64,000 nt of DNA, from the NCBI GenBank assembly GCA_028826165.1, contig JAPDFW010000092.1, positions 186,001-250,000 of the forward strand, given 5' to 3'. A program made the translations under genes and the position numbers. The notes under the pieces are model-generated. The model saw only the letters and a list, made by a program, of their open reading frames with translations. It had not been told where the DNA came from and searched no databases. Shown here in pieces: positions 13,124 through 15,200 of this stretch. This stretch comes from Anaeramoeba ignava BMAN. Taxonomy: Eukaryota > Protista > Anaeramoebae. Position 1 is the first letter of the stretch. Every line of letters starts with the position of its first letter.

Positions 13124-14088
13124 ATGAATCCTATTTTTAAAGAATATGATTATCTTTATAAAATTTTTTTAGTTGGTGATTCTGGAGTTGGAAAATCTTG
13201 TTTAATACTTAGATATTGTGTATTTTATTTATTAAATTGTTTATTAAATATTGAAATGAATCCAAAAATTTCAAATTAAAAAATTTTTTCATTTTAATTA
13301 TAACTTTTTTCAAACTTAATTTTAAAGGATGAAACATATACAGATTCTTATATTTCAACAATTGGAGTTGATTTTGTAAATGAATATTAATTTAATTCAA
13401 TTTTCAAAATTAAGAAAAAAAAAACAAATCAATTAAAAAAATCAATTAAAAAACAAATTGAATTAAAATTTGGATCAGAAAATCAGAACAACTGAATTAA
13501 ATGGAAAAACTTTTAAACTCCAAATTGTAAAATTCAAATTAAAAATTCAATTAAAAATTCAAATAAAAAAATTCAATAAAAAATTCAATCAAAAAAATTC
13601 AATTTATTAAAGTGGGATTTTGCAGGAACTCAAAGATTTTCTCCATATACAAGAACTTATTATAAAGGATCACACGGAATTTTACTTTTTTATGATATTA
13701 CAGATCAAAAATCATTTGATAATCTTAAAATTTGGATTAAAGAAATTCAAGATAAAGCAGATGATGGTGTAAATATTATGTTAATTGGAGCAAAATCAGA
13801 TTTAGTTTCAAAAAGAGTAATTGATACAGAAACTGGAGAAGTAAATTTTTTAATTTGAAAATTAAAAGAAATAATCCAAAAAAAATAATCCAAATAAAAT
13901 AGAAATTAGCAGAACAACTTGGTTATTCATTTTTTGAAATAAGTTCAAAAGAAAATATTAATGTTGATGAAGCTTTTGAATTATTAATAAATCAAATTTA
14001 TCAAAGAGTTAGTAAAACTACTCAACAAAACTCAAACAAAAAATCAAATTCAAATCAAAAAGAAAAAAAAGGATGCTTATTATTTTGA
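13124..14088 (+). CDS. Rab1-like GTPase copy 12
   Basis: GDSGVGKSC / [11 protein letters not shown] / KIRT..KLQI / [19 protein letters not shown] / GAKSD / KKGCLLF*. Confidence 0.92.
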
Positions 14089-14218
14089 ATTTATTTATTT
14101 TTTATTGAAGAATTTGAAATTATTTTTATTCTCAATTTTTTTGAAATTTTAATAAATATTTTTTTTGTTTTAAAATTTATTTTTCATTTTTCATTTTTTA
14201 TTTTTCATTAAAAATTAA

Positions 14219-15200
14219 ATGAATCCTATTTTTAAAGATTATGATTATCTTTATAAAATTTTTTTAGTTGGTGATTCTGGAGTTGGAAAATCTTGTTTAA
14301 TACTTAGATATTGTGTATTTTATTTATTAAATTGTTTATTAAATATTGAAATGAATCCAAAAATTTCAAATTAAAAAATTTCTTCATTTTAATTACAACT
14401 TTTTTCAAACTTAATTTTAAAGGATGAAACATATACAGATTCTTATATTTCAACAATTGGAGTTGATTTTGTAAATAAATATTAAATTAATTCAATTTCC
14501 AAAATTTAGAAAAAAAAAAAACAAATCAATTAAAAAAAATCAATTAAAAAACAAATTGAATTAAAATTTGGATCAGAAAATCAGAACAACTGAATTAAAT
14601 GGAAAAACTTTTAAACTCCAAATTGTAAAATTCAAATCAAAAATTCAATTAAAAATTCAATAAAAAAATTCAATAAAAAATTCAAAAAAAAATTCAAATC
14701 AAAAATGAATTCAAAAATAAAAAGTGGGATTTTCATTCAAGTGAAAGATATAGACCTGTTCCTCATTATTATTATAAAGGATCACATGGAATTTTACTTT
14801 TTTATGATATTACAGATCAACAATCATTTGATAATCTTAAAATTTGGATTAAAGAAATTCAAGATAAAGCAGATGATGGTGTAAATATTATGTTAATTGG
14901 AGCAAAATCAGATTTAGTTTCAAAAAGAGTAATTGATACAGAAACTGGAGAAGTAAATTTTTTAATTTGAAAATTAAAAGAAATAATCCAAAAAAAATAA
15001 TCCAAATAAAATAGAAATTAGCAGAACAACTTGGTTATTCATTTTTTGAAATAAGTTCAAAAGAAAATATTAATGTTGATGAAGCTTTTGAATCATTAAT
15101 AAATCAAATTTATCAAAGAGTTAGTAAAACTACTCAACAAAACTCAAACAAAAAATCAAATTCAAATCAAAAAAGAAAAAAAGGATGCTTATTATTTTGA
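14219..15200 (+). CDS. Rab1-like GTPase copy 13 (near-identical to copy 12 except switch II)
   Basis: GDSGVGKSC / STIGVDF / [19 protein letters not shown] / GAKSD / KKGCLLF*. Confidence 0.92.

Follow-up and report, generated by a model that had tools for sequence, protein, structure and literature searches.

Trypanosome antigenic variation of the VSG type works by gene conversion. In human red/green opsin exon 5 and in RHCE/RHD (PMC3924837) the introns and flanks of tandem paralogues are near-identical, and divergence forms a sharp island of functionally exposed residues; in the MHC, the plant R-gene clusters (Cf-4/9) and the self-incompatibility loci (PMC3924837) clustered paralogues and pseudogenes form a short-tract patchwork in the partner-binding surface. 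In ordinary Rabs the RabF3 region is among the most conserved segments (PMC3327705).

A tandem array of Rab1-derived genes in the anaerobic amoeba Anaeramoeba ignava shares features with these conversion systems. As in opsin and RH, the flanks and introns of paralogues are homogenised around a sharp island at the variable residues, but the array has about 27 copies and many loop lineages instead of two, selection is plausible only, and the island is only presumed to be old and stable. As in the MHC and R-gene clusters, short tracts in the binding surface are common to otherwise unrelated paralogues (copies 13 and 10, copies 12 and 23, and a second array on contig C60); the varied surface here, however, is an intracellular GTPase switch and not a recognition domain, omega >1 was not significant and the data come from one assembly only. 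Broken copies could act as donors, as in VSG-type variation, although the array gave no indication of one expression site, a silent archive or real-time switching.

The Anaeramoeba paper (PMC11550330), which described an expanded Rab1 family and left 187 A. ignava Rabs without an assignment, says nothing of tandem arrays (0 hits for 'tandem'), of conversion or of switch-II variation. In the searchable literature no report of conversion or selection at Rab switch II was found, apart from a remark made in passing on one Tetrahymena pair (PMC2954822). The Rab1 expansion is already published, and for the reshuffling of switch II we found no report; the process is known from immune and resistance genes and the Rab substrate would be new.

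The window, the whole stretch of 64,000 nucleotides that was analysed, corresponds to C82:186001-250000 of the 42.8-Mb assembly. The array genes have five exons and a tandem unit of about 1.1 kb, and their models were rebuilt using GT-AG intron borders. The array and the copies needed below, apart from 10, 12 and 13, are as follows.

1-30600, plus strand: Rab1-derived tandem array, 24 head-to-tail copies in the window, some of them broken; locus L001 adds 3 copies within 3 kb upstream
15332-16737, plus strand: copy 14, a chimera, near-identical to copies 12/13 from exon 1 to intron 2 and unrelated to them in its 3' half, with a near-ancestral switch II
16939-18176, plus strand: copy 15, twin of copy 20
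23146-23882, plus strand: copy 20, exons 1-4; exon 5 degraded
27134-28747, plus strand: copy 23, body twin of copy 24, with a switch II in common with copy 12
28897-29872, plus strand: copy 24, exons 1-4, twin of copy 23 but with a different switch II and exon 3

Judged by sequence, the array genes are Rab1-derived small GTPases. They matched Pfam Ras with E values of 1e-20 to 6e-23 (in copy 12 on exon 4), had Rab1a/1b as top PDB hits and were 56-64 % identical over the G domain to the canonical A. ignava Rab1 (KAJ5073091.1; 58-59 % was also computed). All four introns match positions in the canonical Rab1 gene on C78, which has one extra intron, and a C-terminal prenylation cysteine motif is retained (copies 12 and 13 end in GCLLF; prenylation itself is predicted). 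Unlike Rab1/Ypt1, they lack the switch-II Gln, which is replaced in 23 of 23 compared copies, and several, copy 13 included, are also without the G3 Gly; DxxGQ with its catalytic Gln and a conserved switch II, the mark of canonical Rab1, was not found in the array copies. NKxD reads TKxD or AKxD, the RabF3 region is hypervariable, and the proteins probably have altered switches. Exon 4 starts exactly at the G3 Trp-Asp, and so switch II opens exon 4.

Other features of the window were recorded. The 3' part of copy 14 with copies 15 and 16 corresponds to copies 19, 20 and 21, indicating a block duplication (window 15332-19515 vs 21800-25729). Copies 17-18 (19640-21700) and the end of copy 24 (29900-30660) carry many frameshifts and resemble uncorrected nanopore consensus; they are doubtful pseudogenes. 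Copy 8 has a one-codon insertion in G3 (8583-8600) and an NQI patch in common with copy 10. In the twins 23/24 a 6-nt word is shifted by one base within switch II (27704-27718, 29672-29686), possibly by compensating -1/+1 indels, and may be chance. Directly after the array lies a TBC-TLDc (RabGAP-like) gene (32555-34532), followed by an ORF like a vWA-domain membrane protein (35164-36195) and a SPRY/RanBP9-like ORF (47870-49369), both recognised by eye from the translation, and by an E1 ubiquitin-activating enzyme (54904-57174) 100 % identical to A. ignava M0811_01763.

The canonical Rab1 genes were also compared. Two unlinked ones (L002, L003) differ in exon 4 by only 3 synonymous nt, and their introns align poorly. 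Transcriptome-derived canonical Rab1 proteins (P0134, P0126) carry S75R, S76T and A81C, whereas both genomic genes (L019 and L020, on C89 and C78) have S, S and A; the tails match at 100 %, no genomic locus encodes the R75/T76/C81 variant, and the same transcriptome matches the E1 of the genome over about 900 aa. This mismatch may be an allele, a culture change or a transcript-assembly chimera.

The analysis centred on copies 12 and 13.

13124-14088, plus strand: copy 12, 201 aa; exons 13124-13219, 13328-13375, 13479-13526, 13613-13840 and 13903-14088
13527-13612, plus strand: copy 12 intron 3, low-complexity, last ~12 nt unlike copy 13
13622-13657, plus strand: copy 12 switch-II tract, exon-4 codons 4-15; closest relative copy 23
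14219-15200, plus strand: copy 13, twin of copy 12; exons 14219-14314, 14423-14470, 14577-14624, 14725-14952 and 15015-15200
14625-14724, plus strand: copy 13 intron 3, last ~29 nt unlike copy 12 and loosely like the end of the copy 10 intron
14734-14769, plus strand: copy 13 switch-II tract, without the G3 glycine; closest relative copy 10

The initial annotation had described the two as nearly identical except for 10 of 12 switch-II residues, about four residues elsewhere and small intron differences, and the rebuilt gene models bore this out. Ten of the 12 residues at exon-4 codons 4-15 differ, and exactly four outside them (E7D, K97Q, L167S and E194R, the last lying in an A-run and possibly a nanopore error), 14 in total. 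In the tract DNA 21 of 36 nt differ, the second most divergent value among 253 pairs, and three codons differ at all three bases. Outside switch II the divergence is about 2 %: 1/96 in exon 1, 0/48 in each of exons 2 and 3, 2/183 in the rest of exon 4 and 3/186 in exon 5, with 2/108 in intron 1, 4 substitutions and 2 small indels in intron 2 (which in copy 13 is nearer to copy 14 than to copy 12) and 0/62 in intron 4. Such clustering had P<5e-5 even when the null took account of how variable each site is across the family. Shifting one tract by 9 nt against the other gave an alignment that was rejected as chance, the ungapped register keeping the consensus codons in each copy. Homologue searches, run exon by exon, returned no transcript-derived protein for copies 12 and 13.

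The relatives that had been proposed for the two loops were recovered as well. The copy 13 switch II is 6/42 nt from that of copy 10 (next best 14) and the copy 12 switch II 8/48 nt from that of copy 23 (next best 12). Copies 10 and 23 were also the best non-self matches of the respective tracts genome-wide, and no closer donor was found elsewhere in the genome by this search; an exact 15-mer match on C87 was rejected as donor, the surrounding sequence being unrelated. Less could be kept of the idea that the divergent tract begins in the 3' part of intron 3: the intron end does differ (12 vs 29 nt past the last repeat unit that the two have in common), but the sequence there is low-complexity and exon 4 opens with three identical codons. 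A start inside intron 3 is possible, the claim being weak because the sequence is a slippage-prone repeat. The intron 3 end is identical though switch II differs in 15/20, 23/24, 19/23/24 and 6/8.

Phylogenetic tests gave different trees for the loop and the body. For codons 3-18 of exon 4, the tree joined copy 13 to the broken copy 10 (98/100) and copy 12 to copy 23 (91/92); for the rest of exon 4, 12+13 and 23+24 were each recovered with 99 % bootstrap. AU tests were reciprocal: a forced (12,13) was rejected on switch II (p=0.007), and in the remainder of exon 4 (10,13) and (12,23) were each rejected at p=0.001, so the proposed recombination survived the check for congruent trees. In a parametric simulation under the flank topology, with switch-II branch lengths left free to allow episodic acceleration (a burst in any copy), the observed dlnL was 58.6 against a null of 11.1±3.7 and a maximum of 24 in 150 simulations. 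Both borders of a tract can be seen in one further copy.

10791-11020, plus strand: exon 4 of broken copy 10, with 2 extra nt in a TAT run; codons 3-18 like copy 13 with a copy-8-like patch at codons 6-8, then like copy 9; intron 4 like copy 11

Here a copy-9-like intron end is followed by the copy-13-like tract and then by a 69-nt perfect match to copy 9. These comparisons show that recombination is needed, and they support its having carried switch II between gene bodies.

Short-tract conversion shuffling switch II, as it was originally put forward, is in this respect upheld by the AU tests, but the notion of a special cassette with identifiable donors is not. Seven of eight equal-sized control windows were also discordant (z 4.0-8.6 vs 12.8 for switch II). 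The strongest tracts are long: the one joining copies 2 and 3 takes in the whole of exon 4, and the one joining copies 12/13 with 14 runs from exon 1 to intron 2. A GENECONV-like scan had no switch-II-only tract among its top 30. In the tract the proposed donors differ by 15-18 %, in the rest of the exon by 12-16 %, so they are not nearer in the loop than around it. No window evolves faster than switch II (tree length 2.2x that of the rest), which is also the only 36-nt window without any pair of copies within 1 nt; the smallest distance in the Rab array, 3-4/36 nt, is between near-ancestral copies, and none of the 50 perfect runs of at least 60 nt between copies spans all of switch II. Since the donors are so distant and no near-identical pair exists, the transfers would be old or overwritten. 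F3 and P11 are common to the copy-12 and copy-13 types, and for this reason the direction is not polarisable and copies 12 and 13 could have been the donors; flank conversion sparing switch II fits as well as import of the loop. The array is best read as a mosaic throughout, with switch II as its extreme.

A second array was examined.

C60:775000-794300 (L014-L016): Ras-like tandem array, intronless, 16 units found

Three switch-II types were distinguished in it. Along the array they run C A A B A B C D C B, with a distance of 8.5 % inside a type and 31 % from one type to another. The flank distance is unrelated to type (0.077 vs 0.084, P=0.16). Recent near-identical donor-recipient tracts were seen only in this array: one pair has a single difference over about 140 nt around switch II, while its flanks differ by 12 % and 5 %. 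Discordance is highest at switch II (z 17.9), the P-loop window being almost as high (15.6). The C60 array displays the decoupling of loop and flanks more clearly than the Rab array, and the shuffling of switch II is a genome-wide tendency acting via general exchange and not a demonstrated dedicated system. Further tandem Rab arrays were noted at L005-L013 and L017 (C59, C81, C57, C60); several appear to have switch II intron-split into small exons, and the C59 and C81 copies have long C-terminal extensions.

Copies 15 and 20, said to show the same pattern as 12 and 13, are a weaker case. Exons 2-3 are identical, intron 3 is identical over 117/117 nt and five switch-II residues are changed, but exon 1 carries 7 differences and the clustering is marginal (P=0.017). 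The loop contains only 6 nt changes, 6 non-synonymous and 0 synonymous, for which point mutation is adequate (6 single changes, P 0.03-0.3 at 4-8x rate).

Selection on the loop was estimated in two ways. Counting gave a pN/pS of 1.8 in switch II and, for close pairs, a pN of 0.27 for the loop as against 0.05 for introns 1-2, figures biased by a GC3 of 1-15 %, by the choice of close relatives as pairs and by AT-rich introns absorbing differences into gaps. Codon models with observed or intron-derived base frequencies, covering only 13 codons on a tree fitted to the same data, gave switch II an omega of 1.07-1.17, as against 0.36-0.66 in most other parts and 1.1-1.3 in codons 16-45. Under a two-class model the estimate was 1.6-1.7 (p=0.07-0.11), and constraint fell on codons 7-9 and 13. 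Diversifying selection on switch II is plausible on these figures. We infer that selection for difference ranks ahead of relaxed constraint because each copy has its own loop, the changes in the youngest pair are almost all non-synonymous and the divergence ends at the last changed residue.

The reading that we prefer, and hold with evenly balanced confidence, is that ectopic exchange throughout the array keeps the gene bodies alike, while old lineages of switch II endure, are probably favoured to differ, and move in short tracts. Such exchange, frequent between the ~1.1-kb tandem units and taking the form of gene conversion and unequal crossing-over, would re-homogenise the introns and most of the coding body, above all its 3' half. 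Switch II (exon-4 codons 3-15) sits between conserved arms, the splice acceptor with the Trp-Asp codons on one side and the YYxG-HG block on the other. These arms could serve double-strand-break repair templated by a neighbouring unit; the genome contains Rad51-type and MutS genes. Freed from Rab1-type constraint and probably favoured to differ, the loop would be where homogenising tracts tend to stop, so that old lineages survive; short tracts would also carry a loop lineage into another body, and at least two such moves, of the 13/10 and of the 12/23 type, would have taken place. The products would be Gln-less Rab1 derivatives, predicted to be prenylated, alike in scaffold but each with its own partner-facing loop. 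TBC GAPs supply Gln in trans. Recombination, the decoupled genealogy and the one distinct loop per copy are shown at the level of the sequences; the direction of each transfer, selection for difference and any effect on partner binding we infer.

The strongest competitor, possible if rather unlikely, dispenses with selection for diversity: constraint would have been lost with the catalytic Gln, and a diverged switch II would resist strand exchange by mismatch rejection, its islands being passively re-assorted as the flanks convert. An omega of about 1 in switch II, the missing Gln in all copies, the missing G3 Gly in several and the several broken copies would be expected from it. It accounts less well for the constraint still visible on the E/R/F codons 7-9 and the Tyr pair, for the lack of stops in intact copies, for the 6/6 non-synonymous changes in 15/20, for a kappa of 0.44-1.1 in switch II vs mostly 1.6-6 elsewhere and for the 12/13 divergence stopping exactly at the last changed residue.

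It is improbable that switch II is a dedicated, frequently copied cassette, a hotspot drawing on a donor library of broken copies (copy 10, for example) in the manner of antigenic variation. The loop is the most discordant window in both arrays, conserved arms flank it and the C60 pair has nearly shared DNA around it between more distant flanks, all in keeping with such a device; against it stand the absence of a recent donor-recipient pair and the remote donors in the Rab array, the recombination of other windows and the want of an evident single expression site.

An assembly effect is very unlikely. Copies 12 and 13 might be two haplotypes joined in tandem via a copy-14-like 5' region, or their flanks might have been equalised by short-read polishing: the assembly is a nanopore one, polished with Racon, Nanopolish and Pilon, of an organism of unknown ploidy (PMC11550330), copies 17-18 nearby are noisy, and the 12-13 and 13-14 spacers are nearly alike. 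However, 13 substitutions lie outside the tract, in exons and introns, and the 5' part of copy 13 alternates between 12-like and 14-like, which one mis-join would not be expected to give. The 13/10 and 12/23 links, the twins 23/24 and the C60 pattern are independent of the 12/13 junction, and the loop difference would still be real were 12 and 13 allelic. Two DNA runs contain 59-68 % of the sampled words of the region, a figure that is no test of the 12/13 junction. A history without recombination, in which strong positive selection acted on point mutations after a recent duplication, is adequate for 15/20 but was rejected for 12/13 and is hardly credible for the whole, since it would need 21 changes including the three triple-hit codons (binomial P<=1e-5 given 1.6-3 % flank divergence, even at 8x the flank rate), leaves unexplained the derived residues in common with copies 10 and 23, and failed the simulation with free branch lengths.

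As to what might drive the variation, Legionella enzymes modify neighbouring residues of Rab1: SetA modifies Thr75 of Rab1a (PMC13037854), AnkX Ser76 of Rab1b (PMC7228754) and DrrA Tyr77 of Rab1 (PMC4730224). The variable codons of the array cover the SetA- and AnkX-modified positions and adjoin the Tyr77 of DrrA, and we hypothesise a bacterial driver of switch-II variation. A wider speculation, which we consider doubtful, is that bacterial effectors or symbionts press A. ignava to recombine libraries of switch-II variants onto shared scaffolds. The outcome would be Rabs that act as decoys or escape forms, and an MHC-like Rab/Ras repertoire that possibly extends to the canonical Rab1 genes, whose transcript records depart from the genome at three residues of switch II.

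Few parts of a Rab are normally as conserved as switch II, which is read by GEFs, GAPs, effectors and several bacterial enzymes. Its uncoupling from the gene body would provide a mechanism for making new Rabs in an amoeba with about 230 of them, and would help to explain why about 80 % of A. ignava Rabs are unclassifiable by phylogeny, as mosaic genes have no single tree. Copies 12 and 13, nearly the same protein except for the loop, may serve as a natural experiment on switch II alone, on both localisation and partner choice.
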